This document shows, piece by piece, positions 3,001-29,219 of a DNA stretch of 64,000 bases; positions within the stretch are counted from its first letter, which is position 1, and each line of letters starts with the position of its first letter. Both the position numbers and the translations under genes were made by a program. This DNA comes from Macrostomum lignano (taxonomy: Eukaryota), in assembly GCA_002269645.1 (NCBI GenBank), contig NIVC01002523.1, positions 100,967 to 164,966 of the forward strand, given 5' to 3'. Under the pieces are notes generated by a model. It ran no database searches. It had not been told where the DNA came from and worked only from the letters and a program-made list of their open reading frames with translations.

Positions 3001-6000
3001 GCAGCCTACTGATGTACACCTGGGAACCTGAGAGGAGACAAGTAGACTACTGATGTACACATAGGAACCGAGGAGACTAACAGCCTACTGATGTGCACTG
3101 GGAACCTGGGAGGAGACTAGCAGCCTACTGATGTAGAAGGAAAAATGCAGTAGCAGGCAAGATAAATAGTTTTACGTTTATTATTCTATAAAGAAAAGGC
3201 AATGATAGCAAAAGAGGTGAGCGATCAAAGCAGTCAGCGCCGAAGCAGAATCAACTAGGCTTTTCACGAAGATCGGTTCCAGAACCAGAATAATTCCGAT
3301 TCCGGAACCAGAATCGGTAAGAAAATGAAAAGCGCCGAATTTTTCTATTCTATTTTTGTCTAATTATATTACTTATCAAAAGATAACATTTTTATCTAAA
3401 ATCGAGAAACCAATATTCTTTTTGAAATGTTTGAAATGTTATTTCAAATTCATCCTTTTGTTTCTATAGAAATACGACAGCGGATCGAGAAAATTTCTCG
3501 AACCTAATTTCAGAATCGGATCACGGTCCTGGAACCGGTTCTGAAAACGGAACAGACAATATGAAAGGCTTCGAACCGATTCTGGTTCTGGAATCGGTAA
3601 TATGAAAAGCCTAAACCTCAATTAGAGCCCCTTTTAAACTTAAAAAAATTCGAAGGCCCATCAAGAGTAGCCATTGGGTCTCCAGGTTTACATATCACAG
3701 GTAACTACGCTCGTATTTTAAAACTATCAAAATACCAAAAAACTACCAAAAATTCATGCCGTTAAGATAAAAACCAACAACTTGCTAACTAGACTACTGA
3801 TGATGGCGACCCCGAAACAGTTCTGGCCTAGACTGAGTACTATGAGTAGTATACTTTTCCGAATGAAATTTCTTGGACGAAAACAGACTAACGAATATTA
3901 CGGTTTAGTTAGAGATGGAGGCGGGGCAAGGTGCACTATGGCGCACTTTAAGCGACATTGTCACACAACAGGCGAGAGGCATTACTGCCCATTCCACCAA
4001 CTTCCCTGAGCAGGCACACAAGCGCGCGGATACGTACGCAGTCATACGTACAGGCACACTGTAATACTCACACACACTCACACAGGAGTGTAGAGGGACC
4101 CTAATTTTATTTATCGTTAGGAGGCATGTACACTTCACCGTTCTTTGGGGGTTGGCCCTCAAGGGCGTTAATTGCACGAGCAGAGCCAAGCCGAGATTCC
4201 AATTCAGCCCCAAATTAATTTGACTGCACTGGGAATTGAGCCTGGGCCGCTGGAACATCAGAGCGCCGCGCTGGACCACTAGGCTACGCCCCCTATTTTG
4301 AAATAGTTGCTCATACACTATTTTGAATGCATCCGTTTTGCATTCATACAAATGAAGATAAGTACGATATAATTTACCCGTAGTGAATAAAAAACTGATT
4401 AAGAGGTACATTAAGATTAGGAACAATGAGAACAAGAACTACGAGTATCTGATAAAATGAGAATCCAGTGCATGAGCGAGCGCAAACAGTGGTGCATACG
4501 CGACTTTGCACAGAATTGGTTATTATTAACTGTGAATATTGTTACACACAGCATAGTACTGCCAATATTCACGAGTAGTTATCCGCACATACAGCATACA
4601 CTACTTAAATTACGTATAGTAGTCTGTCGTCGACTAGAGTAATTGAAGAGAGTTATAACTCTTGAAGATCCACTTTAAGATTGAAATTTAAAATGGCGCC
4701 AAAAACAAACAAAACAGAAGAACATTTTTGAAACTTTCAAACAGCGTTAATTTAAAGAAAATTTATTGTCTAACTACTGGCTAAATAAGGCACTGTAAAA
4801 GCACAGCGGTGCTCGACTAGCAAGAGATTAGCGGATAAAATGCAGACAGTCCAATTTGTTAACTTAGCTGGTTTATTAAGCTTACAATACCTGCATAGCT
4901 GAGGACTGATGCTGAAAGCAAATGTGGCGCACAGAAAGTCGCATTTATTGAACTGATTAGCTCGGGAAAATGTAAGAAACGACTCTGTACTTTTACGCCT
5001 CATTATTTTGCGTCTAACATTCATTTAAATATTAGTAAGAGTTTATTAGGATGGACACAACAATTATATCAACTATGTACTGACGTACTACTGCCGCAAC
5101 TAATTCCACAGGCATTGATATTTAAGCGCGACAGATCAACTGTATAATTTCTAATAGAGGATATTATTGCAAGGTTATTAAAGCCAGCTAAACAATGGTA
5201 AGCACAGCATAAATTATGACATGCTTCTTATTTAATCCTACTAAAATATACTACTAGTTAGTAGTATAGGCTTTAGTTAGTGCGCAGGTGGAAGCTATTG
5301 TGTGGTATAAATGAAATCGCATAATTAAAAAATCATGCATATTTTTAGCAACGGACACTATTATCAATAAGTGACCATAGTCAGGAAAGACACACATTAT
5401 AAACATGTGACCACAGTCAACAGAAACACTATCAACATGTGACCACAGTCAACAAAGACACATTATCAACATGTGACCACAGTCAACAAAGACACATTAT
5501 AAACATGTGACCACAGTCAACAGAAACACTATCAACATGTGATCACAGTCAACAAAGACACATTATCAACATGTGACCACAGTCAACAGAAACACTATCA
5601 ACATGTGACCACAGTCAACAAAGACAAATTATCAACATGTGACCACAGTCAACAAAGACACATTACAAACATGTGACCACAGTCAACAAAAACACAGTAT
5701 CAACATGTGACCACAGTCAACAAAGACACACTATCAACATGTGACCACAGTAAACAAAGACACATTATCGACATGCGATCACAGGCAACAAAGACACTAT
5801 CAACAAGTGATCACAGTCAACAAAGACACACTATCAACATGTGATCACAGTCAAGTGAGTCAACAAAGACACATCAACAAGTGATCACAGTCAACAAAGA
5901 CACTATCAACAAGTGATCACAGTCAACAAAGACACACTATCAACATGTGATCACAGTCAAGTGAGTCAACAAAGACACATCAACAAGGGACCATAGTCAA

Positions 6001-8735
6001 AAAAGACCAATCAGACAAAAATGGAAGCTGGAATTTCATTCAGTAAAAAATGATAGCATCAGCGCCAAGGCTCTCACCTTGTGCAGCGTAGCCGAATGGT
6101 CGGCCTCGTCCAAAGAGAGAAAGCTGCTGTCGCTCTCGCTGCGATGATGATGACTAGTGTGGCCGGCTTGCCTGGAGCTGTGCGGCGTCACCGGCGAGCA
6201 CATGCTGGCCGCGCTGACGCTGATCACCTCAACGTCTGACGAGTTGCTCGAGTGTGCTTCGGCAGCTCCGCCTGCGGCTCCTCCGCCAATGATGGCCAGC
6301 GACTCATCCGGCGTGGCTCGCGACTTGCCTGATTGGCCACGGCCGCCGCCACTGCCAACTCCACTGCCGCCGCTGCCGCCGTTCTGCTCGTGACTAGATG
6401 AGCGGCTTGAAGCGGCGGACGCTTTACTGGACTCGTCTAATTCCAGCTCGGCTTTGTCCTCTTGTTGCTCGTCTTCATAGTTGGCTATTACGACGGTATC
6501 GGTGTGAAACTGCTGCTCCCACTGAGCATCGGCGTTGGCGGTTGTTGTCACAGCAAGTTTTGCTGCTGCCACCGCCGCCGCCGCCGCAGCGACAGCTGTT
6601 GGCGCAATCGACTCCAAGTCTGTGACGCTCTGCGGCATAGAGGTCAGAGTTGAGTCGCTCATGCTGGACGACAATGTCAGGCTCTCCGAGTGGCTGCTTA
6701 TCTCCAACTGTTGCCGGTCAAGCTCCCCAGCAGGTTCAGCAGCAGCCGCGGGGGAGGCCTCCGTGATTTCTAGAGCAGCAGCTTGCGGGTCTACCGCCTC
6801 TTTTTCTGCTTCGGCTTTATCTATGACAGGCTCTTGTGTGTCCGACTCCACTAGAGGATTGTCGGTTTCGCTGACAGCCACAGTCTGCTGGCTGCCGGCG
6901 GCAATCTCGGCAAGAAGAATTGCGTTCATAGCCTCGTCCGATCTGAGAGTTTGATCAAGCGCATCTTCTGCATCTATGCTGCTATCCGCCATGTCATTGT
7001 CATCTGTAGCCGACTGTTCTCCCACCTGGGTCTGTTGTAGTCCGTCACCCAGATTACTCTGCTGCTGCTCCTGAAGTTGCGTTTTGTCTTCTGCTTCTGC
7101 TGGCTCTTGCTGCCGCTGCTCCTCTTCCTGTTGCTTCCTTAATTCCAGCTGTTTTTGATGCTCAACGTCTTTCAGATTCTCCAACTTTTGTTGCGTCCGC
7201 AATTCTTCCTCTTGTTGACGCTGAATTTCTTTTTGTTCCTCCTGCTGACGCTGAATTTCTTTTTGTTCCTCCTGTTGACGCTGAATTTCTTTTTGTTCCT
7301 CCTGTTGACGCTGAATTTCTTTTTGTTCCTCCTGCTGACGCTGAATTTCTTTTTGTTCCTCTTGTTGACGCTGAATTTCTTTCTGCTTTTCCTGTTGACG
7401 CTGAATTTCATTCTGTTCCTCCTGCTGACGCTGAATTTCATTCTGTTCCTCCTGCTGACGCTGAATTTCTTTCTGTTCCTCCTGCTGACGCTGAATTTCT
7501 TTCTGTTCCTCCTGCTGATGCTGAATTTGATTTTGTTCCTCCTGCTGACGCTGAATTTCTTTTTGTTCCTCCTGTTGACGCTGAATTTCTTTTTGTTCCT
7601 CCTGTTGACGCTGAATTTCTTTTTGTTCCTCCTGTTGACGCTGAATTTCTTTTTGTTCCTCCTGTTGACGCTGAATTTCTTTTTGTTCCTCCTGCTGACG
7701 CTGAATTTCTTTTTGTTCCTCTTGTTGACGCTGAATTTCTTTCTGCTTTTCCTGTTGACGCTGAATTTCTTTCTGTTCCTCCTGCTGACGCAGAATTTCA
7801 TTCTGTTCCTCCTGCTGACGCTGAATTTCTTTCTGTTCCTCCTGCTGACGCTGAATTTCTTTCTGTTCCTCCTGTTGACGCAGAATTTCTTTCTGTTCCT
7901 CCTGCTGACGCTGAATTTGATTTTGTTCCTCCTGCTGACGCTGAATTTCTTTCTGTTCCTCCTGTTGACGCAGAATTTCTTTTTCTTCCTCTTGCTGACG
8001 CGAAATTTTCTCTTCTTTCTGCTTTTCAAGTTCTTTCTGTCTTATCATCAATTCCTCTTCTGCTTGTTTTTTCTGCTTCTGCTCTTTTAATAGAATTTGT
8101 TCTTCACGCTTTCTTTTCTGCTCTACTCTTAGTCGTTGACGTTGCAACTCTTCTTCTTCTGCTTGATCTGGCAGGTCAACTAGGATATTTTCTGGCGGTA
8201 CAGGCGAGCTCGAATGTGGGGCACTAGGCGATTTTGCTATGGCAGGCTGGTCAATACCGAATGAGCTGAAAAAGTCCGAATGTTGCTTGATCTGGCCACC
8301 GCGTACCGTGCTGTCAGAGCTGTCCGCCACCGCCTCCAGACCTCCGGATGTAGACGTGAGCATGATAGACTCCGAGACCCAGTCGCCAACCATTGACGCA
8401 TCCATCCTAGTAGCGCTAGGCATCCTGTGCTGGCCACTTCCGCTTCCGGTCGGAGACGAGCGGCCAGTTGCTTCCTCCGCCGCTACAGACGATGCTGGCG
8501 GCTTCGATCCCGCAGACAGAGCCGCGGATGTTTCTACAGCAATGCCGAATTGTCCAAAAAAGTCGTCTGGCGAGCCGCCAGCGGACGTTCCCGCCGCCGC
8601 CGCAGCGGCCGCAGCAGCTGCCTCCTCTTCGCGAATGTCTAGCGCCTTATCGATGCGCTTCTGCGCCGATTTCAACGCTTTAGAAGTGGCCGACTGCAAC
8701 TTGCCGACGTCCCAGCTACTGAACCAGCCAGACAT
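1..8735 (-). CDS. TMF1: TATA element modulatory factor 1 (golgin TMF1/ARA160) ortholog, 3' part outside window; exons 8735-6078, 2099-1996, 1279-613, 394-<1
   Basis: N-terminus MSGWFSSW...KSAQKRIDKALDI. Spliced coiled-coil segments DLNSLTEEFTSRIADAERRFQQAVKEKE, LMREGERMAQEQLKASNLLKKLRAREKE and SQPLLRQLESLQKSHSAAQLSWEAVEDQL match TMF1 motifs. All three GT-AG junctions preserve frame (phases 0,2,0). Confidence 0.88.
1298..1970. repeat. Minisatellite, ~33-bp unit GGGTCATTACACCTGCCGCTCTATGTATCCAGT, filling TMF1 intron 2
   Basis: About 19 tandem copies visible; source of spurious ORFs 1171-1858. Confidence 0.95.
2500..3135. repeat. Minisatellite, ~36-39-bp unit (CTACTGATGTACACATAGGAACCGAGGAGACTAGCAG and variant) in TMF1 intron 1
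   Basis: Tandem copies of two alternating variants. Confidence 0.93.
3256..3613. mobile_element. MITE-like element, TIR (TA)GGCTTTTCA...TGAAAAGCC(TA), subterminal GGAACCAGAATCGG repeats
   Basis: Inverted termini at 3256-3266 and 3603-3613; related copy at 47527-47784. Confidence 0.55.
3789..3831 (+). ncRNA. Degenerate minimal type I hammerhead ribozyme motif
   Basis: CTAGACTA-CTGATGA-T-GG(CGAC)CC-C-GAAAC-AGTTC-TGGCCTAG: catalytic core, short stem II, 8-bp stem I with one mismatch; helix III is imperfect. Confidence 0.5.
3985..4290 (-). mobile_element. Diverged copy of tRNA-derived SINE family B
   Basis: Shares GTGTACATGCC, TGTGTGAGTG and GGAATGGGCAG blocks with the copies at 14310, 43128, 50945 and 59888. 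Confidence 0.45.
5365..6000. repeat. Minisatellite, ~29-34-bp unit AACATGTGACCACAGTCAACAAAGACACATTATC in TMF1 intron 1
   Basis: About 20 tandem copies. Confidence 0.93.
7215..8000 (-). repeat. Coding 30-bp minisatellite, about 26 x QQEEQKEIQR, in TMF1 exon 1
   Basis: In frame within ORF 6036-8735. Confidence 0.95.
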
Positions 8736-9279
8736 TTTGCCTGCTACAGTTGAGATGTTATTGTTTTAGTTTTCCAGAGCTACGCTTCTGAGACAATTAC
8801 TATTTTTGTATTATTAGCAACTTTTGCGGCTATTTTAAGCCCGCATCAATGATGAGCTGGTTAACTTGAGCAGCTGAAATGGCGCAAGCAATGATTTATT
8901 AACATTTGTTTAGTACTGCTGTTAGTAGTAGTAAAGCTGGCACTTATGATGACTCTTTCATATTGCCAAAAAGTAAAAGCAAATCGGATTACGTCACTTA
9001 GGTGGAATTATTTTTGAAAAAAATTATTTACTTCTTAACTTCAGGCTATTTAGGAGCAAAATAATGTCAATGCAGAAATTACCAATGAGCTGGGAAAAGC
9101 AGAGTACAAAAATATTATCCAGCTAACTGCTTAGTTTGACTGAAAGATCAAATGAAATACAAAGAGTAAACAAATGGAAATTTCAAATAAGAGCAATGAT
9201 ATTTGATGTTTGATAATAATGTTTAGTTTAAGAGTAAAATTGCTAATTGATTATAAACTGGAGCAACTAGGGTTTGATA

Positions 9280-9782
9280 TCGGGAGTGAGTGTTCATTGG
9301 GGTGGGGAAAGCGGGCTATTGTGCCCTGAAATCGGGAGTGGAGGTACTTTGGGGTGAGGAAAGCGGGCTATCATGCCCTGAAATCGGGAGTGGATGTACT
9401 TTGGGGTGAGGAAAGCGGGCTATCATGCCCTGAAATCGGGAGTGGGTGTACATTGGGGTGAGGAAAGCGGGCTATTGTGCCCTGATATCGGGAGTGGATG
9501 TACATTGGGGTGAGGAAAGCGGGCTATTGTGCCCTGATATCGGGAGTGGATGTACTTTGGGGTGAGGAAAGCGGGCTATTGTGCCCTGATATCGGGAGTG
9601 GATGTACTTTGGGGTGAGGAAAGTGGGCTATTGTGCCCTGATATCGGGAGTGGATGTACTTTGGGGTGAGGAAAGCGGGCTATTGTGCCCTGATATCGGG
9701 AGTGGGTGTACATTGGGGTGAGGAAAGCGGGCTATCATGCCCTGATATCGGGAGTGGGTGTACATTGGAGTGAGGAAAGCGG
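9280..9782. repeat. Minisatellite, 52-bp unit TGCCCTGATATCGGGAGTGGATGTACATTGGGGTGAGGAAAGCGGGCTATTG, between TIMELESS and TMF1
   Basis: About 10 copies, 52-nt spacing (e.g. 9323 to 9375). Confidence 0.95.
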
Positions 9783-10056: not shown

Positions 10057-13000
10057 TTATTCCGAGTCGCTACTCATGATCAGCTTCTGACGTTTCTGTT
10101 TGACGGCGGCAGACAACGGCGATACAGTCGATAAGGCAGCGGCCGATCGTGCCGACTTGCCGACGCCGACAACTGGGTCGGTCTCATCATCGGATGATGA
10201 CGAAGAGGAAGACGAAGACAGACGGGGCCGTTTGCTGTTGCGCTTCTCCTGCGTGTCGGCGTCGACATCGACGTTTTCTTTGTCGGCCGCCGCCGATGCG
10301 GCGGCAGAGGAAACGGACTGACGGCTGTTGCTGTCCTCAGCGACTGGCGCGCCGCCGGTGCGTCCAGCCGGCAGGATGTAGGCGTCAAACTCGCTGCGAT
10401 CGGCCGCCGTCGTCGTGGACTTCAACGCTGGCGGCGAGTTGAGAATGCCGTCAAAGGCTAGCGGATCTTCACGACGCGATGGTGGCAATCTGAGCTGCTG
10501 TTGCTGGCGTTGGCGCCGAAAGTCTGCTAGGCTGGTGCACGGCCCGGACTTGTGCGCGTCGGTGAACTCGTCAGAAACGTCGTTGTTGTCGTCGGCAAAT
10601 TGTCGCAGCACATTCCGGATGTCCTCGTCGCCAATGCCATCGATGTCGCTGTCGCCGTCGCCGCCGTTTTCATCAGCGTCGCCATTGTCGCTATCGGAGA
10701 ACTCTGGCCGGCCAAAGTTGGCCAGCACCAGGGCCTCGAGATCGGCATTCGGGGCGGCCAACAAGTCCAGGACTCGGCGCAGCTTCTCAGCGCTGGCGTC
10801 GGCCGGGCAGCGCCAGAATCGGCTGGCGGCATCCAGGGCCGGCGGCTGCAGGCCGGCGCTAAGCAGCAGACCGGCGCAGATTGGCTCCTCGTCCAGAGCG
10901 GCGTCGGCAGCCGGGTCAAGACAGAGCAAAACCTGCTCGTCGGCGTCACCAGCCAGACGGTCGCGCAGACAGTCGGCCAGCTGGTCAGCTAGCCAGGCCA
11001 GGCAGGCGGCCACGCCGGGCCGATCGGACTGCAGTCGGCGGGCATTCAACAGCCGCTCGGCCAGTTTGGCTTCGTCCATGCGCGGAGCCGGCGGTGCCGG
11101 CGCCGAGGCCGATTTAGCGGCAGCAGAGCCCGAGGGTGGAACGAATTCCTCGCCATCGCGACCTGCCCGACGATCCGCTTCATCGCTGTCGCTATCATCC
11201 GAGGTCGCGCCTTTCTGTCCGCTAGTCGCTTTGCTGCGACGCTGGCGTGCCTTCGAACTTGACGGATTATCGCCCGGTCGCTTGGCCCGCTTCGCTTTGG
11301 TCGCCGGCTTCTTGCGGAAATCGGCCGCCTTGGAGCCGAGGCCCAGCTGCACCATGCGCCGCATCACCCGGCGCCGGCTGCGGCCCCGGTCGCTCAGTTC
11401 CGACTGCACAAATTCTACAATGTCGTTTACGTCCTCGCGTTGAACGGCCAGATCGTACAGGCAGCGCAGCTCAGCGTCCAGATTCTCCGTCCAGCGAGCT
11501 TTTTCGCCCAGACGTCGGGCAGCCGCTGCGCCTTTCGGATCGATGGCGGCGGCGTAGTTGTCGGAGATATCCCGCGCCTCAGGCAGCGACTTGAGGAACA
11601 GGGGCTCGCAGAATACGGCCGGATTGCGTTTCACCGCGGCGACAAACTGGCCGACAATATGGCGACAGAGGCGCGGCAGCTCCTTGTCCGGACAGTCGGG
11701 ATCCTTCAGCACAGTCTGCAGTACGCGGAACGTTCTCAGCTGGTAGAACATGGGCCCGGCGCTGGTTTCTGTGATCATTTTATGCGCTAGCCGGACAGCG
11801 CTACAATTGACGGCTGGCGCGTTTAGCCGATAGTTGGCCAACACCCGGGTCAACGCGAGCACAGTGGCGGGATGACAGAACCGCAGCAAGTATTCGCCGC
11901 TGTCGAAACGGCCTTTCTCGAATTCTAAGTCTTCCTCGTCGTCGACTAGACCCTGCGCCTCGAGGAGCTCCTCGTTCACAGGCGGCGCCTCATCGTCCGC
12001 CTCCTCGTTGCCAACGGCGACGTCAGCATCAGGCTCGGCCGCATCCGGCTTTGCACTGTCAACGAGACTGGCGTCCATTAGGATCGCTCGCAGCAACAGC
12101 AGATCGTCGGCAATGTCGAAGTGGCCGCACATGGGGAACAACAGCCGGCAGCGCCGAGCGCACACCACCGACTCTGCTAGGCGGCCGTCGATAAGCAGAC
12201 GCTGTACAGCGCCGGCTGCTGAAGCCGCCTGCTCGGCCTCTGGAGCCAGTGGGTCGAACAGGCGCGGCAGGCCGGCTTCGTTAACCTCGGCCTCGACGCC
12301 TTCGGGAGGCGCGGAAACCAGCTGGCTGAGCGCGTCGCCGAAGCTGTTCCACAAGTCGTCGCGCTGCTCCTCCGTCAGCACTGTCGCCTGTTGCTGTTGC
12401 TGTTTAGCCGCTTTCCGTTTGCTAGATTTATTACCTTGCTGTCGGCGACGGCGCCTAGCCTTGGCGCGGCTCTTCCTGCGCTGCTGCACCAGATTGCCGT
12501 CTCGGGCCCAGCGGTCCATTAGGCGCATCATAGCGAATCCGCCTTCTAGGACTTCCCTATAGAGATCCAGGCCCGCCCAGCGGTCTTGGATGCTGCGCAA
12601 TAGTTCGGGATAGGCATCGCGATACTCTGGCAGGTACAGAACCTCGCGGGCCAGGGCGCGGGACTCTTCCACCTGGGCTAGCCAATCGGGATCAGTCTCG
12701 TAATCGGCCGGGCTATTTTTATTAGCTGAATTAGACGGCAGGGCGATGGCAGCTGACAGCACTAGAAACATTTGATTATAGGCGCTCAAGGCTAGCAATA
12801 GCCGGCGCGACCAAATAGCTTGATTGGCGCCGCGCTCAAGATTGGCGCTCTCCGCGCAGGTCATTATCTGGCGATGAACGAAGCCGAACGAGTCCAAGCT
12901 AAACGCGGCAGTCAGATGGTGCAGCGCGGGGCGCCGGGATCCGCCAGGCCGGTGTCGGGCGTAGGCAAAGAAGAACTTCACGGACCAGAGGTAGAAGGTC

Positions 13001-15834
13001 TCGTCTCCAACCTGACTAGACGGACTATCCAGGTGTTGTCGAGCGCGCCGCATCAGCGGGTTGAACGCTCGGGCTAGGAGGGCTTCGCATAGGTCGCGCA
13101 GACCCTCGGTGACGCGCGAGGTTGTGATAGGCGCGGCGCCGCCTTCAAAATCGCAGCCGCCAGCGCCGGTCGAGCGAGGATCGTCCACTACTAGGCGGCG
13201 ATTTTTTGGCACTTTTCGGCGGGTTTTGTCCTGATCGCAGGACCAGTCCCGCAGCTGGTTGAGGTCCCGGTGGAACACCACGGGCCGGCCGGCCACGCCC
13301 GTGACCCCAGTTAGCTGGTAGGTGCCGCCGAATCTGCAGAGGCAGTGGGCATTGAGGCTATTTGAAAAGTTGGCTACTTGACAATCAAGTTACTTGACAA
13401 CCAGGCTAATTGACAACCTGGCTACTTGAAAACCAGACTATTGGCTACCTGGCTACTTGACAACCAGGCTACCTGACAACCTGGCTACTTGACAACCAGG
13501 CTACTTGACAACCTGGCTATTGGCTACCTGGCTACTTGACAACCTGGCTAATTGGCAACCCGGCTATTGGCTATCTGGCTACTTGACAACCAGACTATTG
13601 GCTACCTGGCTACTTGACAACCAGACTATTGGCTACCTGGCTACTTGACAACCTGGCTACTTGACAACCTGGCTACTTGACAACCTGGCTACTTGACAAC
13701 CTGGCTACTTGAAAACCCGGCTATTGGCTACCTGGCTACTTGACAATCAGTCTACTAACTGCCTGGCTATTAACTACCTGGCTACTAGCTACATGGCTAT
13801 TAGCTACCTGGATATTGGCTCACCTGTCTATAAACTACCTAATGCTCTAATTAGCTACCTGGCTGCTTACGACTACTGGAGGCTTAACTTTGTCCATCGG
13901 CAAGCAAAATTCAACGCGACTTGAAGCTTTCTAGTAAATAAATTGTAATAGAGTCATTGTAGGTGCATCAAACGCCCAGTGTAACTGAATAAAAGTATAT
14001 CAGTCTAGGAGTATCTGCACCAATAAGTCAATTGCTCTCTGAGAACGGATAGCACGCACTGCCATTAAATTACATTAGCCTAAATGCGAGCACAAAAATT
14101 CTCAGAATACAAATCTATTAATGTCGGTGTATCAAACGCCTAATAAACTGAATCTAATCAATTCAATCAGCCTAGGAGTATCTACACCTTAAATTTACTC
14201 TCTGAGAACGGATAGCACGCATTGTCATTTAAAAAATATTATTTTTGACTCAAATGCGAGCACAAAATTCTCAGGCCATATATGCCGGACTGAATGCTTT
14301 GCGTATATGTTGGCGTTTACATGAGTAATAAGCGCCCGACTCTTGCATCACGACCCCTGGTTCGATTCTGTGCGCCAGCACAATTCATTTGGGGCCTGTC
14401 GTACGATTCAGACCCGTGAGGGCCAATCCCTAAGGCACAGAGAGTGTACATGCCTGGCTAGAGCAGAAAGTCAGGGCCGCTGTACACCCCGTGTGAGCGT
14501 GTGTATGAGTGCGTGCCTGAGTACAGCATTGGCATGTGCTCAGCGGAATGGTGCAGAATTGCCTCAGCGCTTGTATTGGAACTTGTCTAAGCTGATCTGC
14601 TACGCTCATATTCAATTAGCAAAGTAATGTACAATTTACCTGCCCCTGCCTCGCCCCCTTCGCTCTGTACACTGTACACTGCTTTATCGATCGTCCAGTC
14701 GCCCCAACCCCCTTCTTGACTCACCAATGCTAGCCATCGCTCCGGCGGGCTCTTTACCTTTTTGCGCCTCGTATTCTAATATAACTGGCCGATTTCACAA
14801 TACCGCTGGTTGGGGGGCAAGTCATGTCAGCAATTTTTACACGCATTATATGGTCTGTTATAGGGTAAACAGCAAGAGCTACTATGACTCTATTAAGATT
14901 GTCAGGCGCCTCGTCATCTAATCACTCACCTTCCATGCCTTGTGGACAGGTATCGAAAATTGTCACACCGAGTCTCGGATCGAGCCTCGGCTTTGGCCGC
15001 TCGCTCCAGCGCGGCCGATGCGGACGCAACCGCGGCGCTGCCGCCGGCCAGAGCGGCTGGATTCCTGTGCCGCAGCAGCAGGTGCAAAATCTCCAACAGG
15101 TGCATGCTGTAGTGCTTGCAACCGGCGGAGTTGGCCGCCAAGCCAACCAGGGCCCGCGGCAGGCCGGCGTCCAGCAGGCAGCGAATCAGGCGCTCGTGAC
15201 AGATGCGCGGATCGTCGCGGGCGTCCTGACCGCAATTAACAGCGGCATCGACTCCGCCGGCGTGTAGGACATTGCGCAGTACAACTAGCACCCTTTCGAG
15301 TCCTTCGCGCTCCTCGTCGCCGATATAATCCGAGCCAGCGTCGCGACGATCAACAAAATTATCGATTAATTTAGTGAACTGACGCAGCAGCTCGACGTCG
15401 CAAAAAGCCAGCTTGTAGTCGGCCAGGTGGCTGAGCAAGGCGATGTAGTGCGGCCTGCGTGCCGGGTCAGGGAGCTGGTTCTGGAAGCACAGCAGGGCCG
15501 GCTTGGTCAGGCACACCATCAGTCGGAGTGTCCGGTCTAGAACGTCGGTCTCGTCAGCGTAGCGCTTCACTAGGGGCAGCAGGTCGCGCTGCAGCAAACG
15601 CAGCCTGGCCAGCTCGCGCCGCATATCGCAGGTGTCATCTTCGCGACGGAGGCAGCGGAGAATGTCGCGCAGAGTCTCGGCGCAGTCTGGCTCGCGAATG
15701 TACACACCGGATTCGTCCGGGAAGCCGAGAGAGTTGCAGAATACGTGCAGATCGGCGAAGCGCTGATTAGTGGACGGCTGCGGCTCCGACTGCTGCTGAC
15801 TAGGCTGGGACCGCTGCGACTGCGATGAAGCCAT
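10057..15834 (-). CDS. TIMELESS: TIMELESS (replication-fork protection, Tim/Timeout type), 2 exons 15834-14930 and 13333-10057, about 1393 aa
   Basis: N-terminal TIMELESS domain (YIREPDCAETLRDILRCLRREDDTCDMRREL). The junction restores the conserved RHGRFGGTY. Myb-like segment WTENLDAELRCLY and C-terminal PARP-binding-like segment (GLQPPA...FWRCPA) are present. Confidence 0.93.
13355..13870. repeat. Degenerate minisatellite (GGCTACTTGACAACCT / GGCTATT units) in TIMELESS intron
   Basis: Tandem 16-bp and 7-10-bp subunits. Confidence 0.9.
13955..14105 (-). ncRNA. Box H/ACA guide RNA (snoRNA/scaRNA-like), copy 1, in TIMELESS intron
   Basis: Hairpin (CUGAGAA/UUCUCAG), H box AGAGCA, second hairpin (GGUGCA/UGCACC), ACA 3 nt from the end; 151 nt; sense to the host gene. 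Confidence 0.85.
14119..14274 (-). ncRNA. Box H/ACA guide RNA, copy 2, in TIMELESS intron, 13 nt from copy 1
   Basis: H box AGAGUA, ACA at 14124-14122; compensatory stem changes relative to the other copies; 3'-hairpin pockets invariant. Confidence 0.85.
14310..14575 (+). mobile_element. tRNA-derived SINE family B copy
   Basis: B box GGTTCGATTC followed by the body shared with other copies, ending CAGCGGAATGG-GCAGAATTGCC. Confidence 0.7.
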
Positions 15835-16060
15835 GATGAATGCAGTCAGCCCGGTTGCAGCGGGTGATGGGGAGAAATGCTTGGCTAACGACTGTCTCAG
15901 TACACTACTTTGAACTGCCTGAATATTGTCTACCTGGCCTTGTGTTTATTCAATTTTAATTAGCAATTTTGCCTCAGACAGTGACTTAGCATCTGCCATC
16001 TACCATACTTGATGATACACAGTGTTAAAGATCTTAGAGATTTAGTACATTGTATATTGT

Positions 16061-16211
16061 GATTGTAGGTGCATCAAACGCCCAGTACACTGAATATTGC
16101 AATGCTCAGCCTAGGAGTATCTACACCCTAAATGAGTTGATTGCTCTCTGAGAACGGATAGCACGCACTGTCATTATAGATTAACACAAGTGCGAGCACA
16201 ATAATTCTCAG
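16061..16211 (-). ncRNA. Box H/ACA guide RNA, copy 3, upstream of TIMELESS ATG
   Basis: Same architecture: H box AGAGCA, ACA at 16066-16064, 14 nt from the 3' pocket to ACA. Confidence 0.82.
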
Positions 16212-16254
16212 TTGTCGTAATACAGTGTGTGCTGTATTAGTACTGTCTACACTA

Positions 16255-16665
16255 TGTAAACTACCTGAAGATTGTCTACCTGGAACTTCACTACCTGAAT
16301 ACTGTCTGCCTGGCGTTTCACTACCTGAATATTGTCTACCTGGCGTTTCACTACCTGAATATTGTCTACGTGGTTTTTCACTACCTGAATATTGTCTACC
16401 TGGCGTTTCACTACCTGAATATTGTCTACGTGGTGTTTCACTACCTGAATATTGTCTACCTGGCGTTTCACTACCTGAATATTGTCTACCTGGCGTTTCA
16501 CTACCTGAACATTGTCTACTTGGCTTTTCACTACCTGAATATTGTCTACTTGGCTTTTCACTACCTGAATATTGTCTACCTGGAAGTTCACTACCTGAAT
16601 ATTGTCTACTTGGCTTTTCACTACCTGAATATTGTTTACCTGGAAGTTCACTACCTGAGTATTGT
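16255..16665. repeat. Minisatellite, 30-bp unit TCACTACCTGAATATTGTCTACCTGGCGTT
   Basis: About 13 copies; source of spurious ORFs 16128-16780. Confidence 0.95.
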
Positions 16666-16772
16666 CTACTTTTGTTTCGTTTATTCAATTTCAATTAGTA
16701 ATTTTGTTTCACGGTTTCTAGACAGTGACTTAACATCTACCGGTACTGTACTTAATGGTAAAAAAGTGTATT

Positions 16773-16923
16773 TATTGTAGGTGCATCAAACGCCCAGTAC
16801 ACTGAATATTGCAATGCTCAGCCTAGGAGTATCTACACCCTAAATGAGTTGATTGCTCTCTGAGAACGGATAGCACGCACTGTCATTATAGATTAACACA
16901 AGTGCGAGCACAATAATTCTCAG
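16773..16923 (-). ncRNA. Box H/ACA guide RNA, copy 4
   Basis: Essentially identical to copy 3. Confidence 0.82.
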
Positions 16924-17146
16924 TTGTCGTAATACAGTGTGTGCTGTATTAGTACTGTCTACACTATGTAAACTACCTGAAGATTGTATACCTGGAACTT
17001 CACTACCTGAATACTGTCTACCTGTTCACTACCGAGTGTTGTCTACTTTTGTTTCGTTTATTCAAATTTCAATTAGTAATTTTGTTTCACGGTTTCTAGA
17101 CAGTGACTTAACATCTACCGGTACTGTACTTAATGGTAAAAAAGTG

Positions 17147-17297
17147 TATTGTAGGTGCATCAAACGCCCAGTACACTGAATATGTCAATGCTCAGCCTAG
17201 GAGTATCTACACCCTACATGAGTTGATTGCTCTCTGAGAACGGATAGCACGCACTGTCATTAAGAATTAACACAAGTGCGAGCACAATAATTCTCAG
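17147..17297 (-). ncRNA. Box H/ACA guide RNA, copy 5
   Basis: Near-identical to copies 3 and 4; changes fall in loop, hinge and upper-stem positions. Confidence 0.82.
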
Positions 17298-20999: not shown

Positions 21000-23900
21000 T
21001 CACTTCTTCCTGCTTCTAGTCCGCTGTTTATCAGCGTGTTGAACAATCTGCTGCCTAACTGGCATGCCTTTGCGCCGTCTCACTTCCATCAGATAATTGA
21101 CAATCCGCATTCGTTCGTCGCGCAGGTCGTCGTCTTCGCGGGGCAGCATCAGCGGATCCCAGTCGCACAGGGCCCAGTGACTGAAGCGAAGCTGCGCCCC
21201 GGCGAAACCCGAAGTTCGTTTGCGTAGCTCATCTGCTAGGCCGAAGCTTTCAATAACTGGCATGTGACCGCGGAGTACAAACATGTTAGTGCCTTCTCGC
21301 AGGTCCTCCGACACAATGCGGCCCTGATGCTTGGCTAGGACTGCGTGTACTTTGCCTAATACCTGCGGGTATTAGCGCGAGATTGTGCAGCTAATTTAGT
21401 CTATGCTAGTTTTATAATGTACAGGTGGTACTTTGCACTCGATTCTTATGATTCTCTACATGTAGTGGTTTTTGTGCGTATTGACCAAAAACCATATATA
21501 AGATCTATGGTATTGACCCCCCCCCCTACCAACCCATCAGTGATTAGCTACCCCCCCTCGCCAATCCATCAATAGTTAGCTACCCCCCATCCATCAATAG
21601 TTAGCTACCCCCCCAATCCATCAATAGTTAGCTACCCCCCCCATCCATCAATAGTTAGCTACCCCCCCCCAATCCATCAATAGTTAGCTACCCCCCCCAA
21701 TCCATCAATAGTTAGCTACCCTCCAATCCATCAATAGTTAGCTACCCCCCATCCATCAATAGTTAGCTACCCCCCCATCCATCAATAGTTAGCTACCCCC
21801 CCAATCCATCAATAGTTAGCTACCCCCCCCAATCCATCAAAAGTTAGCTACCCCCAATCCATCAATAGTTAGCTACCCCCCCCAATCCATCAAAAGTTAG
21901 CTACCCCCCCAATCCATCAATAGTTAGCTACCCCCCCCCCAATCCATCAATAGTTAGCTACTCCCCAATCCATCAATAGTTAGCTACTCCCCAATCCATC
22001 AATAGTTAGCTACCCCCCAATCCATCAATAGTTAGCTACCCCCCCCCCAATCCATCAATAGTTAGCTACCCTCCAATCCATCAATAGTTAGCTACCCTCC
22101 AATCCATCAATAGTTAGCTACCCCCATCAATCAATAGTTAGCTACCCCCATCAATCAATAGTTAGCTATCCCCATCAATCAATAGTTAGCTACCCCCCCC
22201 AATCCATCAATAGTTAGCTACCCCCATCAATCAATAGTTAGCTACCCCCCCAATCCATCAATAGTTAGCTACCCCCCCCCAATCCATCAATAGTTAGCTA
22301 CTCCCCCCAATCCATCAATAGTTAGCTACCCCCCCCAATCCATCAATAGTTAGCTATCCCCCCCAATCCATCAATAGTAAGCTACCCCCCCCAATCCATC
22401 AATAGTTAGCTACCCCCCCCCAATCCATCAATAGTTAGCTATCCCCCAATCCATCAATAGTTAGCTACCCCCCTCGCCAATCCATCAATAGTTAGCTACC
22501 CCCCCATCCATCAATAGTTAGCTACCCCCCAATCCATCAATAGTTAGCTACCCCCCATCCATCAATAGTTAGCTACCCCCCCCAATCCATCAATAGTTAG
22601 CTACCCCCCCAATCCATCAATAGTTAGCAACCCCTCATCCATCAAAAGTTAACTACCCCCATCCATCAATAGTTAGCTACCCCCCCAATCCATCAATAGT
22701 TAGCTACCCCCCCAATCCATCAATAGTTAGCAACCCCTCATCCATCAAAAGTTAGCTACCCCCATCAATCAATAGTTAGCTACCCCCCCCAATCCATCAA
22801 TAGTTAGCTACCCCCCCCCCCAATCCATCAGTGGTTACATCAGCCGGTTGAAAGCCTACGAGTACATCCTACAGCCCTAGATAGGTAAATTCATTACCTC
22901 GCTGCGGCACTGCACATCAACGGTGAACGCGGCCAGCATGAGCCGCCTATTGGCGTGGCACAGGAACGCTTTGCCGAACGTCTTGCTCGCGTGGCTCATC
23001 AGCTGACCGGCTGACACCGTCAGCTCCGGGTAGCGCTCGTCTCCAGCTGTTGAAACTTCGCAAACGTCCAATAGAACGAAGGCGACGCCGCGTAGAGGCT
23101 CTCGACAAAGCGGACCTTGTTGACAAGTCCATTGGAAGCCGTTAATTATCGCCTGCCACAGGTGCGAGGAAACAGCCGATGCAGGAGTACTATTAGTAGT
23201 ATTAGTAGGCAGCAATGGCGCGGCCAGGGTACCGTCGGGCAGTCTGGCGGACGGGCCAAGCAGCAGCAGGTTGCAGGGATCGCGGCGGGGCCCGGCAGCC
23301 AAGACGGAACAGTCGGCAAGTCTGCCAAGTTCAACAGAAGCGGCGGCGGCATCAGAAGTGGCGGCTGAATCTAAGGCTAGGAGTTCGCTACGAAGGCCGT
23401 CGCGCAGGGCTAGAAGCGCGGTGTCAGCGGCGCCGGCAGCAGTGGGACGCCTGCGAAGCGCATCGGCGTGGTTCTCCAGCAGGCGAATGGCGCCAGCCGA
23501 CAGAGGAACGGCGCGGACAGTCAGCGCCAGATGTCGGTCGGCGTCGCGAGCCTGCATTCGACAGCAGACGAGGCCCCGACAGGCGTCTAGCACCTCTGGA
23601 TCGTCTTTGCCGCCAGATTCGCCGATGTCCAGCTGGCTGAGCAGCTCTTCCGGCGGCGCTTCGTCCGCGTCGTCTGTGTCAGCATCGGGATCGTCGGCGG
23701 CTGCGGCGGCGGCTTCAGCCAAAGCCTCGTCCGTAGCTAATGTCTCACGGAACGGCACCACGATAGGAGAGGTGGTGAATTCCACCTGGACGACGATAGC
23801 AAATTGCGGAGTATGGAGTATTATTAAATCTATTTTTTGCTACAATGGTAAAATGTTTCATTGAATTAAATCGTCAATATAGAACACTTCCACACAAGCA

Positions 23901-26900
23901 TGAACATTATATTTTTATTGAAGGCCATGTGTTTGGCAGCCCCCGACTCCCGATTAGGAGTCCCTGACACCCAAATCAAAATTGATGACAAGATCCAACC
24001 CTGACATCCAGACAGGCATCCTGACAGCTAGATCAAAACTTGGCACCCAGGTCTAAACCCCTGACACCCAGGTCTAAACCATGGACACCCAGGTCTAAAC
24101 CATGGACACCCAGGTCTAAACCATTGACACCCAGGTCTAAACCATTGACACCCAGGTCTAAACCCCTGACACCCAGGTCTAAACCATTGACACCCAGGTC
24201 TAAACCATTGACACCCAGGTCTAAACCATTGACACCCAGGTCTAAACCCCTGACACCCAGGTCTAAACCATTGACACCCAGGTCTAAACCATTGACACCC
24301 AGGTCTAGACCCCTGACACCCAGGTCTAGACCCCTGACACCTAGGTCTAAACCCCTGACACCCAGGTCTAGACCCCTGACACCTAGGTCTAGACCCCTGA
24401 CACCCAGGTCTAGACCCCTGACACCTAGGTCTAGACCCCTGACACCCAGGTCTAGACCCCTGACACCTAGGTCTAGACCCCTGACACTCATGTCTAAATC
24501 CCCAATAATATTTTAATGAAACAAATTCTCACCTTAGCATAGCACTGCCGTAGGTCGCTTAAACACTTAGCCAGGTGCACCTCCCCACTAGAGCAGACGA
24601 CATTCTCGCCAGTGTCTTCCAGCAGCACCTCGGCTCCGGGATCGTGCCGCTCTAGCAGGCGCAGCCCGGCCAGCAGGCGGCTCTGATCGGCCGGATTGAC
24701 GCACTCGACTGCCACCCGGATGATGGGCGCCGCCTCCGACGCCATGTCGCTAAAAGCCGGACAATCCAGCGTAGCGCTCAAAGTTGCCGTTTTAATAACC
24801 CGATCGGCGAGACCTTCGACGCCAACAATGGCGCCGGCGCCGGCGCCGGGCACCGATTCGAAGTCGCGACCTCGCATTAGTAGCACTCGGCCTATTGTGC
24901 AAACGCTCGCGTGTCTCAGTCCGGAATCGGACAGTCGTTTCTCAGCGTCCAGCGCGTCCGGCGTCAATTCGGCCAGGCCCGGCGGCAACCGGTCGGGTCG
25001 GTGGCGCGGCGACAGCAGAAACAGGCGATCGCCGGGCCGAACAATGCCCGAATAGATGCGACAGAAGGCTACGTAGACGCTCGGCGAAGAATCGTTGTCC
25101 GTGTTGGAAGCGGAAGCTTCGGCGGCACTTTCGCCGTTGGCATCGACAGCGGCAGCCTTGGTGGCCCGCATTGCCTCCCACTGGCGTCGGGCCTCAAGAC
25201 GGCGCTGCTCAAGTTCGGCAGCCGATGTGGCCGAGGCTTCCGGCGGCGGAGCCGAAGTCAGACCGGCCGGAGCCGGTTCAACAATGCAGCCAGCCGGCAC
25301 GGCCATCATTTTGGAGGCGAACGCGACAAGAGGACCGTCAGGGCTGCAGGCGAGAAAATGCTGACGGAGGCAGCTTAAGCCTGCGCTCTCCGGGCTGCCT
25401 TCAACGCCGCCGATAGTTAGCAGGCGGTTGACCTTGAAGTAGATAGAGAGCAACTAAAACATTATGCTTATGAAAATAATAGCAATACAATATAGACATT
25501 TAGCCTAGCCTTCAATATAATCCGACTGGTTTGGCCACTGGATTGTTGGCCATACAAATGTGCACTATTAAGATTTTAGTCAAGTCTAATAAAAAATGCC
25601 TACCTTATCAGTGCTCAGCTGTCGAGGCGAGGGGCACCTGGCCACAACGGCTTCTAGGACGGCGCGGGCCACCGGCAGCCATTGGGCGGAAAAAGCGGCC
25701 AGAGCCGAGTGCGGATCAGCGCCAGATTTAAGATCGCGCGGCCCAAGGCGGATGTCTAAACTGGCGCACATTTTGCTTATCTTATCGGCATCCCGATTAG
25801 TAACAAAAGTGTCGTAAACTGTCCACAGGTTCTCTAGTACAAGCTGTACGAATAGCGGTTTGCGACCTTTGACGCTGGCGCCTCTGTACACCTAGAAATC
25901 GGAGTATTTATTATTAACATGTTACGCTCGTATTGCTCTGAAACTACTTTTCCTTCAAGTGCCATAGAGTGACTGTTTGGATGAGACAGTTTATATTCAT
26001 TGGATAGAACGCCATATGAATTCTATACCAAAACTCTAACTAGCCTACTGCTAATTAGAAGCAACACAAGGTAAGGCATTAGTAGAACGTAGGCACCAGA
26101 AACATTAATTTGGGGGGGGGGCACGGTTCCTAACCTTTAAAATCATTGCTAAACTGCTATGAAGGAACTGACCTAATATTACAGAAAATAATGGGATGCA
26201 TGTAAAGTTCCGCTGAAATCTCGCCTTCGACGCTAATATTTTGCCTTCAGCACTAAATTGGCGTTAAATCCTCGCCTTCAGGGGGTTGTAACATAGTGTT
26301 TAGAGCGTCGGACTCACGACTTGAAGTTCGGGGGTTCGATTCCCGATCCCACTGAAACAATAGTGTTTAGAGCGTCGGACTCACGACTTGAAGGTCGGGG
26401 GTTCGATTCCCGATCCCACTGAAACAATTTGTGTCCTTGAGCAAGACACTTATAACTCTGCATTGCTTCAGTTCACCCAGCTGTAAAATGGGTACCAGCA
26501 TTAGCTGGGGTAATTGAGGGTGTGTGGCGACCCCCCAGTCCTTGGACTGAACAGCCCTCGCAGCCTTCAGATGCGCCGCGCAATAGCTGCGGCTGAGCCG
26601 TCGGTTGCACACCTGGCCCAATTGAGGCAGGTGTAATCAATTTATCATTATCTCCTTCGGCACTAAATTGGCACTAAACCTTCGCCTTCGCTACTAGACT
26701 GGCGCTACACAGGCTCGAGAATATACTCTGTAGTAGTGGGACTCTTGTCCACTTCTCAAAAACAAAAGTTCCGCGATGCCCGGTAGAACGACATTTAAAC
26801 AGACGTAACTCTGTGGCCTAATAAAAATCGTATACGAAAACACGCCAAAAAAGTTGCTGAAAGCTTTCTAAATCTAAACACCAAATAATTTTCATAGAAA

Positions 26901-28685
26901 CGCAGCCAATCATTGCGTCTAAAGTTCTCGCCTGATAATAAGAAACTTCCTGCCTCTGTGGTCTGACTGTCCTCAGCTAGAACTAACAAAGTAGTATATG
27001 AGTAGTATGCAAGCACATAACTAAAAAACTGACCTTTTTCTCCTTAGCAGCATAAAAATAGTCGCCCCACAGAGCCCTGCTAAGTATCCGTTCGCTGCAG
27101 CCCAGTCTCTTAGCTAATAATCCAGCGAAATCGTCTAGACGAAAGCCCCAGCCGTCGAGGGCGCTAGCGAATACAACATTGCCGCGCGCCGGCGCAAAGT
27201 ACACGTGCTCGTCTTCGGCCGACTCCAAGCCGCTCAGCCAATCGCTGCTCAGTGTCACCTCGGCGACGCTGTCGGTGGTTTTTTCGACAGGCTGCGATTC
27301 CTTTGGCTTCTCTTGCTGTTGTTGCTGCTGCTGCTGCTGTTCTTGCTGCTCCTGCCGCTCGAAGAATTCCATTCGATAGAGCTCAGCCATCAGAGCGTTC
27401 ACGGATTCAATTAGCTTCCACAGGTGGTGATAGGCATCCGTGGGACTTAGCCGCAGCTCTAATATTAGCCTGTCGACTTTGTTAATTAATAGTACAGGCG
27501 TGACGCTCTCTCGCCAGGCCTGGCGTAGCACGGCTACAGTCTGGGGCGAGACGCCTTCTACCGCATCCACAACTACGATGGCGCCATCGCTGAGGCGGAC
27601 CGCGGCTGACACCTGGGTGGAGTATTGGAGCATCGAGGTGGATCACAAGGCTCATTTAAGGTGAATTTAATTGGTGCTAAGGGGTTAGGGGTGGATTTCT
27701 ACGAGGATTAGGGTGGATATCTATGAGGATTAGTAGTAGATATCTATGAGGATTAGGGGCGGATATCTATGAGGATTAGATGCGGATATCTATGAGGATT
27801 AGATGCGGATATCTATGAGGATTAGATGCGGATATCGACGAGGATTAGGGGCGGATATCTATGATGATTAGGGGCGGGTATCTATGAGGATTAGGGGCGG
27901 ATATCTATGATTGGGAGTGGGTATCTATGAGGATTAGGGGCGGATATCTATGATGATTAGGGGCGGGTATCTATGGGGATTAGGGGCGGATAGCTATGAT
28001 TGGGAGCGGGTATCTATGAGGATTAGGGGCGGATATCTATTATGATTAGGGGCGGGTATCTATGGGGATCAGGGGCGGATATCTACATGTATGATGATTA
28101 AGGGCGGATATCTATGATGATTAGGCGCGGGTATCCACGAGGATTAGGAGCGGATATCAACAATGGGTTAGGGTAGTTATTTGAACAGCTTTAGGTGGAA
28201 ATCTATTAGATTATTAGGATGCATAATAGTGCATATCTGTAAGGGGCTGAAAGGCGCATATTTATAGAGCAGGGGTTGGATGCATGCAAGGGACTTAAGC
28301 CAGAAATATTCTTGACTTCGTGGCGCTTTTCTACAGATGCTCGGAGCTAAAAACAGCAAAAAACAAGCTAAAGCAACCCCTTACCCACCTCCGAGGAGAA
28401 GTCGATATGACCGGGACTATCAATCAGGTTAACAACGTACTGTTCGGAACATTCTTTGCGATTGTATAGCAAAGATATTATGGAGCTTTTCATAGTGATG
28501 CCGCGCTCCTGCTCCTGTTCTAAGCTGTCCATGTAGCGCAGGCGGGCAACTGAGCGACTAGGAATGATGCCGTTTGTAGCTATTAAACAGTCAGCCAGGG
28601 TGGTCTTGCCGTGGTCAACGTGGGCCAAGATGCACACATTTCTGGTTCGTTCAGCCTTGGACTTGGTGGCTGTAGGCGGCTCCAT
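21000..28685 (-). CDS. EFL1: Elongation factor-like GTPase 1 (EFL1/EFTUD1/Ria1); exons 28685-28389, 27612-27034, 25891-25604, 25432-24533, 23785-22898, 21362-21000; about 1104 aa
   Basis: G motifs [30 protein letters not shown]; later [39 protein letters not shown]; all junctions GT-AG and in frame. Confidence 0.95.
21515..22825. repeat. Minisatellite (C)n-AATCCATCAATAGTTAGCTA with variable poly-C, in EFL1 intron 5
   Basis: About 45 copies of a 24-31-bp unit. Confidence 0.95.
23965..24490. repeat. Minisatellite, 21-bp unit ACCCCTGACACCCAGGTCTAA, in EFL1 intron 4
   Basis: About 22 copies; source of spurious ORFs 24033-24516. Confidence 0.95.
26281..26652 (+). mobile_element. tRNA-derived SINE family A with CORE-like central domain and duplicated tRNA head, in EFL1 intron 2
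   Basis: Head with GGTTCGATTCC occurs twice; GTGTCCTTGAGCAAGACACTT...CACCCAGCTGTAAAATGGGTACC; tail GCAGGTGTAATCA; second copy at 28905-29219. Confidence 0.8.
27680..28165. repeat. Minisatellite, ~23-bp unit GGATATCTATGAGGATTAGGGGC, in EFL1 intron 1
   Basis: About 20 degenerate copies. Confidence 0.92.
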
Positions 28686-28904: not shown

Positions 28905-29219
28905 AGTAATAATATAATAATAATAATAACTGATTACACCTGCCCTAACTGGGCCAGATGTGCAACCGATAGCTCAGCCGCAGCTATTGCGCGGCGCATC
29001 TGAAGGCTGCATACGGCTGTTCAGTCCAAGGACTGGGGGGTCGCCACACCCAACCCTCAATTACCCCAGCTAATACTGGCACCCATTTTACAGCTGGGTG
29101 AACTGAAGCAATGCAGAGTTAAGTGTCTTGCTTAAGAACACATTGTTCTACTGGGATCAGGAATCGAACCCCCAACCTTTAAATCATAAGTCCAAAACTA
29201 ACCACTAAGCTACAACCCC
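28905..29219 (-). mobile_element. tRNA-derived SINE family A copy with (TTA)n-like tail
   Basis: A box TAGCTTAGTGG, B box GGTTCGATTCC, body collinear with 26281-26652. Confidence 0.8.

Follow-up and report, generated by a model that had tools for sequence, protein, structure and literature searches.

A candidate box H/ACA guide RNA family for U2 U34 in and upstream of the TIMELESS gene of Macrostomum lignano

Introduction

In both vertebrates and flies, a box H/ACA guide is responsible for pseudouridine (Psi) 34 of the U2 small nuclear RNA (snRNA) (PMC5733568, PMC3884663, PMC5473140). The vertebrate guide SCARNA8 (U92, pugU2-34/44) and the Drosophila guide scaRNA:PsiU2-35.45 (pugU2-35/45; the position is numbered 35 in fly and yeast) each have a pocket for this uridine and also guide Psi44/45. 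Each lies in an intron of a protein-coding gene, which for the fly RNA is gp210 (PMC3884663). SCARNA8 serves positions 43/44 with its 3'-terminal pocket (PMC5733568) and is single-copy in most vertebrates (PMC5473140). Here, a family of five related units is described from the TIMELESS locus of the flatworm Macrostomum lignano. It lies in a stretch of 64,000 nucleotides (nt), referred to as the window, from assembly GCA_002269645.1 (contig NIVC01002523.1, positions 100,967 to 164,966 of the forward strand). The units are probably real and functional box H/ACA guide RNAs, and the prediction that their 3' pocket directs pseudouridylation of U2 U34 is given a probability of about 0.65.

On this prediction the M. 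lignano RNA would be a functional analogue of SCARNA8 and pugU2-35/45. It shares with them the box H/ACA architecture, the U2 U34 pocket and, for two of the five copies, a location within an intron of a protein-coding gene. However, it differs in several respects. The U34 pocket is the 3'-terminal one, unlike that of SCARNA8; the second pocket shows no pairing fit to U2 U43/44; the single-copy state of SCARNA8 is replaced by four to five clustered copies; and the copies do not share a conserved Cajal-body (CAB) box. Orthology with SCARNA8 was considered and rejected, because Rfam reveals no family-level similarity and the second pocket misfits U43/44.

Other described arrangements offer further parallels. 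Yeast snR81 and some fly small RNAs specific to Cajal bodies (scaRNAs) have dual specificity for snRNA and ribosomal RNA (rRNA) (PMC3884663). In a similar way, one pocket of the M. lignano RNA may guide U2 and the other a different class of RNA. Human U93 (SCARNA13) consists of two tandem H/ACA domains, and the two intronic M. lignano copies likewise form two complete H/ACA domains in one intron, but these are paralogues with the same pockets rather than two different guides. Paralogous units amplified by local duplication are also found in the intronic H/ACA clusters of Drosophila and the polycistronic small nucleolar RNA (snoRNA) clusters of plants; the M. lignano locus resembles these in that a single intron or transcript holds several H/ACA paralogues, and differs in that three of its copies lie upstream, outside the annotated coding gene. 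The family thus extends the known class of box H/ACA guides by one member, for which an snRNA target is predicted, and represents no new system or mechanism. It is unannotated and newly found in M. lignano, the RNA class itself being well known; a full-text literature search returned no description of snoRNAs or scaRNAs from this species.

Results

The first-pass annotation of the window had reported a unit of ~151 nt present five times on the minus strand. Sequence reading and alignment recovered the same five intervals exactly, with lengths of ~151-156 nt. Read 5' to 3' along the minus strand, the copies are c5 (17147-17297), c4 (16773-16923, 374 nt downstream of c5), c3 (16061-16211), c2 (14119-14274) and c1 (13955-14105). 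All are 151 nt long except c2, which is 156 nt. By sequence they fall into no more than three independent types: A (c3, c4 and c5, all upstream of the TIMELESS ATG), B (c1) and C (c2), the last two lying in TIMELESS intron 1. A covariance model built from the copies and run over the whole window scores the five at 182, 184, 183, 143 and 153 bits for c5, c4, c3, c2 and c1, respectively; no sixth copy was found in the window with this model, in which nothing else scores above 17 bits. A 22-nt core, CTCTGAGAACGGATAGCACGCA, is present five times, and 100 shuffles did not produce it once. Alignment with 10-nt flanks shows that the shared sequence runs from CTGAGAA, whose first base is the first base of the 5' stem, to 3 nt past the ACA, and that the flanks of c1, of c2 and of the c3-c5 group are mutually unrelated and unalignable. 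In ~113 kb of M. lignano sequence, made up of the window and two other versions of the locus, all 13 copies are at TIMELESS and none is elsewhere.

The architecture originally proposed for the unit, a hairpin, an ANANNA box, a second hairpin and an ACA 3 nt from the end, is present in the minimum free energy fold of each of the five minus-strand copies. The energies of these folds range from -43.6 to -48.3 kcal/mol and their z-scores, relative to dinucleotide shuffles, from -2.4 to -4.3; in every copy the plus strand folds less stably. An H box, AGAGCA or AGAGUA, follows immediately 3' of hairpin 1 in all copies, and its sole variable position is an N of ANANNA. In c3 it is AGAGCA at 16142-16147, in c5 AGAGCA at 17228-17233 and in c2 AGAGUA. 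The ACA is invariant (16064-16066 in c3, 17150-17152 in c5, within the tail ACAUUA in c2). In all five copies the cross-type homology stops 3 nt beyond it, which is the basis for the predicted 3' end of the RNA. The consensus fold contains 38 pairs, and 98% of its cells are paired; shifting the 3' partners by 1-3 columns lowers this share to 27-46%.

In RNAs of this class, 14-16 nt separate the H or ACA box from the pocket top. The distance from the upper stem of hairpin 2 to the ACA is 14 nt in all five copies, and that from the upper stem of hairpin 1 to the H box is 13 nt, or 16 nt if the two top pairs open. The 3'-hairpin pocket is formed by a 5' strand, GAUACU (16116-16121 in c3), and a 3' strand, CGUUUGA (16074-16080 in c3). 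The 5'-hairpin pocket is formed by UUGUGCU and GCUAUCCG (16155-16162 in c3). The strands of the 3' pocket had been called invariant, and this holds for the five copies in the window; across the 13 copies of the three locus versions it fails once, where a 1-nt insertion is present. The two strands of the 5' pocket are invariant as well, so that its conservation equals that of the 3' pocket.

Differences between the copies respect this structure. Each of the structure-preserving substitutions that had been listed is present, and pairing is kept in every stem change. One pair in the upper stem of hairpin 1 is C-G, U-G or U-A, one in the lower stem of hairpin 2 is U-G, C-G or U-A, and the upper stem of hairpin 2 shows U-G to U-A and G-C to G-U. 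Another version of the locus adds a U-G to C-G change at the base of hairpin 1 and a G-U to A-U change in hairpin 2. The presence of G-U pairs identifies the minus strand as the RNA strand. With regions delimited using these same sequences, 9 of the 89 columns that make up stems, pockets and boxes vary, whereas apical loops, hinge and tail vary at 55 of their 75 (Fisher p = 3e-17), and each of the nine fits either pairing or an N of ANANNA. Formal covariation comes from two pairs with double changes, and the observed score was reached by 7 of 500 shuffles. The location of the variation is a stronger signal than formal covariation.

For target prediction, every uridine of human U1, U2, U4, U5, U6, U11, U12, U4atac and U6atac (sequences from preprint 10.1101/2021.08.01.454689) was scanned for bipartite pairing with each pocket. 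U2 U34 is the best match of the 3' pocket among all uridines of the nine snRNAs. At the sequence UCAAGUG[U34 A]GUAUC, all 12 of the 12 pocket positions used are paired, CGUUUGA forming 7 base pairs (bp) with U27-G33 (5 Watson-Crick and 2 G-U) and GAUAC forming 5 bp with G36-C40; the runner-up scores 10 of 13. Only 3 of 3000 shuffled 3' pockets matched the U2 score on any uridine of the nine snRNAs. U34 and A35 sit atop the pocket, where the 14 nt between upper stem and ACA gives the canonical spacing, and the nucleotide preceding U34 is held in a C-G pair with the pocket. That nucleotide is the position to which guiding is most sensitive (PMC5733568). The match points to an RNA of the snRNA-guiding, scaRNA-like type, and not necessarily to an rRNA guide.

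The 5' pocket probably guides a second site, for which several candidates were considered. Among the nine human snRNAs no convincing target was found, the best being U2 U161 with 10 bp including 3 G-U (p ~0.02). Nothing above noise was found in provisional 18S, 25S and 5.8S rRNA sequences, which provide leads only, and there was no fit to a provisional M. lignano spliced-leader sequence. The pocket strand GCUAUCC is complementary to GGAUAGC, a universal 28S sequence after which metazoans have a U (primer CCAGCTATCCTGAGGGAAAC from the literature). The resulting site, GGAUAGC[U]GG, was set aside as a target and kept only as a lead, since its 7+4 bp are within the noise of an rRNA-sized search. 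By provisional numbering its uridine is approximately human U1466, and not the known Psi1523, and it is not known to be a pseudouridine.

The host gene reads on the minus strand. TIMELESS exon 1 (14930-15834) starts with the ATG at 15834, ends at a GT donor at 14929-14928 and matches a UniRef entry of Macrostomum lignano at 100% identity; exon 2 (10057-13333) runs to the stop codon and is 99% identical to PAA84069.1. Window positions 57-25855 agree at every base with L002, a locus sequence from contig NIVC01002523.1. The annotated protein PAA57160.1 reads ...STRHGR joined to FGGTYQ..., a junction that fixes intron 1 at 13334-14929 as a GT..AG intron of 1596 nt. This intron contains c2 and c1, on the host sense strand with 13 nt between them, and a 16-nt minisatellite. 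The copies c3, c4 and c5 are on the same strand, 227-1463 nt upstream of the TIMELESS ATG (the end of c3 being the nearest) and downstream of a synaptobrevin gene. Thus, of the location that is normal for this class, in an intron on the host sense strand, the strand applies to all five and the intronic position to c1 and c2, whereas c3-c5 lie upstream of the ATG. They may be within an intron of the 5' untranslated region (5'-UTR), in an outron or between genes, the sequence being compatible with each. A consensus-like donor, tgtct/GTAAGT, is present on the minus strand at 17465-17460, 163 nt upstream of c5; if used, this GTAAGT would place c3-c5 in a TIMELESS 5'-UTR intron. No orthologous TIMELESS loci from other species were obtained, as protein searches with both exons gave only M. 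lignano proteins, and cross-species covariation is therefore not available.

Local tandem duplication has enlarged the family, whose copy number varies among versions of the locus. Upstream, the copies belong to a module duplicated in tandem that consists of the RNA, a ~110-nt spacer and a minisatellite, with spacings of 374 and 712 nt, and c4 and c3 share 251 nt at 99% identity, 5' flank included. Two other locus versions in the same assembly, L001 (NIVC01000390.1, 8539-11890) and L003 (NIVC01000985.1, 6339-9315), have four copies each, two upstream and two intronic, against five in the window, so the family is retained while its copy number changes. Comparison of the window with L001 gives 1.3% differing sites for the units and 3.2% for the non-coding flanks, with substitutions and indel events both counted (p = 0.01). 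Two copies in L003 are altered. One (7047-7198) carries the 1-nt insertion mentioned above, in the U2-guide strand (GAAUACU), and the other (9000-9151) has a shortened apical loop and ACAAUA in place of ACAUUA.

The minisatellite of the duplicated module has a 30-nt unit with two CAGGTAG motifs and occupies 16260-16669 on the minus strand, between c4 and c3. The intronic minisatellite, also on the minus strand (13372-13786), lies downstream of c1 and has CAGGTAG-bearing units of 16/31 nt. By eye, the first halves of the two units are identical at 14 of 16 positions (CAGGTAGCCAATAGTC versus CAGGTAGACAATATTC), and the satellite was therefore probably co-duplicated with the RNA. The window contains 36 occurrences of CAGGTAG where 6.5 are expected; of the 36, 33 lie on the minus strand and only near the H/ACA copies (13445-17024), with short runs at 16973-17024 and 15930 in addition to the two minisatellites. 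CAGGTAG looks like a 5' or a recursive splice site (aatattCAG/GTAGTG). Open reading frames (ORFs) of 134-188 amino acids at 16128-16694, over c3 and the 30-nt satellite, were discarded as by-products of the repeat and not genes.

Database comparisons did not assign the units to a known family. At gathering thresholds, Rfam 15 had no match to the units in the whole window. With the region and single copies searched at E <= 10, only weak generic H/ACA matches and no SCARNA family were obtained, namely snR11 at 21 bits (c2) and the trypanosomatid H/ACA RNA TB10Cs5H3 at 14 bits (c3). An exact search with the 22-nt core gave no match in JGI metagenome contigs.

Elsewhere in the window, Rfam gives a weak match to transfer RNA (tRNA) at 29152-29219 on the minus strand, in which the T arm is shortened and the score is 33 bits, the gathering score being 29; ARAGORN reported no tRNA in the window, this interval included. 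The match may represent a degenerate tRNA, or else an element derived from a tRNA. Two tandem 67-nt units, 98% identical and with a tRNA T-arm-like sequence (GGTTCGATTCCC), are found at 26293-26428 in non-coding DNA between ORFs of an elongation-factor-like GTPase gene, and may be a tRNA-derived repeat. In the part scanned, the first 30 kb of the window, the non-coding DNA is densely occupied by minisatellites of 21-52-nt period at approximately one per few kb (1299-1935, 2507-3135, 5354-6007, 9275-9782, 21561-22817, 24044-24503 and 27685-28158), several of which yield long spurious ORFs in the six-frame list. A further 30-nt repeat, of 27 copies at 92% identity, is found at 7206-8008 within the minus-strand ORF 6036-8735, where it encodes a QQEEQKEIQR-type repeat; the protein has no Pfam match on record.

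Discussion

Several points weigh against a U2-guiding H/ACA family. The match was scored on human U2 and not on the U2 of M. lignano itself; the stretch concerned, GAUCAAGUGUAGUAUCUGUUCUU, is identical in human and S. cerevisiae and can therefore be assumed for the flatworm. The duplex contains two adjacent G-U pairs, its computed arm energies are small, and an extra U remains unpaired atop the 5' strand, opposite A35. Pus7 is able to make U2 Psi34 without a guide (PMC3884663), so that a guide could be redundant. Only type A copies have a CAB-type UGAG at the apical stem-loop of hairpin 2, where types B and C read UGAU, and c2 carries UGAG in hairpin 1; Cajal-body localisation can thus not be inferred, with the proviso that the consensus scored, ugAG, may not be that of flatworms. 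In flies the CAB box is dispensable for guide function (PMC3884663). Formal covariation is thin because there are only three independent sequence types, and the conservation test against L001 is weak because the locus versions are ~96-99% identical. The insertion in the guide strand of one L003 copy is also unfavourable, and could reflect decay or an assembly error.

The modest duplex and the unconserved CAB boxes, together with a 5' pocket that has no snRNA target and a complementarity of GCUAUCC to 28S GGAUAGC, could also be accommodated if the units were genuine H/ACA RNAs with a coincidental match to U2 U34, their real targets lying in rRNA or another RNA, or if they were orphans. This is thought unlikely, but it deserves to be kept in mind. 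Against coincidence, every one of the 12 positions pairs, at a known conserved pseudouridine and with canonical spacing from the ACA; very few shuffled pockets equal the match; and the scans of the provisional rRNA sequences gave only noise-level alternatives. The guide function could instead be denied altogether, with the copies regarded as a non-functional repeat, whether satellite-associated, a mobile element or decayed snoRNA-derived sequences that still resemble H/ACA RNAs. The association with minisatellites, in a genome that is rich in them, the inclusion of the upstream copies in larger tandem duplications, the variable copy number and the copy with a guide insertion are all features such a repeat might have. 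However, a repeat of this kind would not be expected to vary so selectively outside stems, pockets and boxes, to share homology across types only over the predicted mature RNA or to lie always on the strand of the host gene. A check for a miniature inverted-repeat transposable element (MITE), the alternative named at the outset, or a SINE-type element found neither terminal inverted repeats (TIRs) nor target-site duplications (TSDs) at the units (TIR identity 3-5 of 20, longest shared flank word 3-5 nt, no inverted repeats), and no dispersed copies within the ~113 kb of M. lignano sequence. A non-functional origin is accordingly judged improbable. It is scarcely credible that the units act solely in cis, as structured regulatory elements of the TIMELESS precursor messenger RNA (pre-mRNA), for example in the control of its splicing; their sense orientation and closeness to arrays resembling 5' splice sites would suit such a role, but H/ACA boxes, pocket geometry and U2 complementarity would play no part in it and five redundant copies would be unexpected. 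The proposal made at the outset, of a functional and locally amplified guide family, is thus supported by the two-hairpin fold, the spacing of the boxes, the sense strand, the confinement of variation to positions outside stems, pockets and boxes, and the lack of TIRs and TSDs.

If the units are a U2-guiding H/ACA family, a conventional pathway can be proposed for them. From their position in intron 1, c1 and c2 would be transcribed within the TIMELESS primary transcript, and c3-c5 presumably from an upstream 5'-UTR intron, an outron or a same-strand intergenic stretch. As expected for this class of RNA, a dyskerin/Cbf5-Nop10-Nhp2-Gar1 core would assemble on the hairpins and on both the H box and the ACA box, after which trimming of the flanks by exonucleases would leave an RNA of ~151 nt. 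With only 13 nt between them, c2 and c1 would need endonuclease separation or would persist as a twin H/ACA RNA. The complementarity of the 3' pocket to U2 nucleotides 27-33 and 36-40 would then allow it to bind there and direct the conversion of U34 to pseudouridine. A more elaborate scheme combines the c2-c1 twin RNA with trans-splicing of the TIMELESS pre-mRNA, whose outron or 5' intron would release c3-c5, and with use of the CAGGTAG arrays as U1-binding or recursive-splicing aids in that release. Separately, it has the 5' pocket guide pseudouridylation at a position particular to this lineage and not known from model organisms, such as the 28S site considered above. It is speculative and given little credence.

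The RNA described here adds a concrete guide RNA to an animal that is a model for regeneration and stem-cell biology. At a practical level, it improves the annotation of the TIMELESS locus and yields a covariance model that can be used on flatworm genomes. The predicted target suggests that RNA-guided pseudouridylation of the U2 region that recognises the branch point reaches the Platyhelminthes. Since the hairpin arrangement and copy number are unlike those of SCARNA8 and pugU2-35/45, the family also bears on how guide RNAs may turn over while the site that they modify stays fixed.

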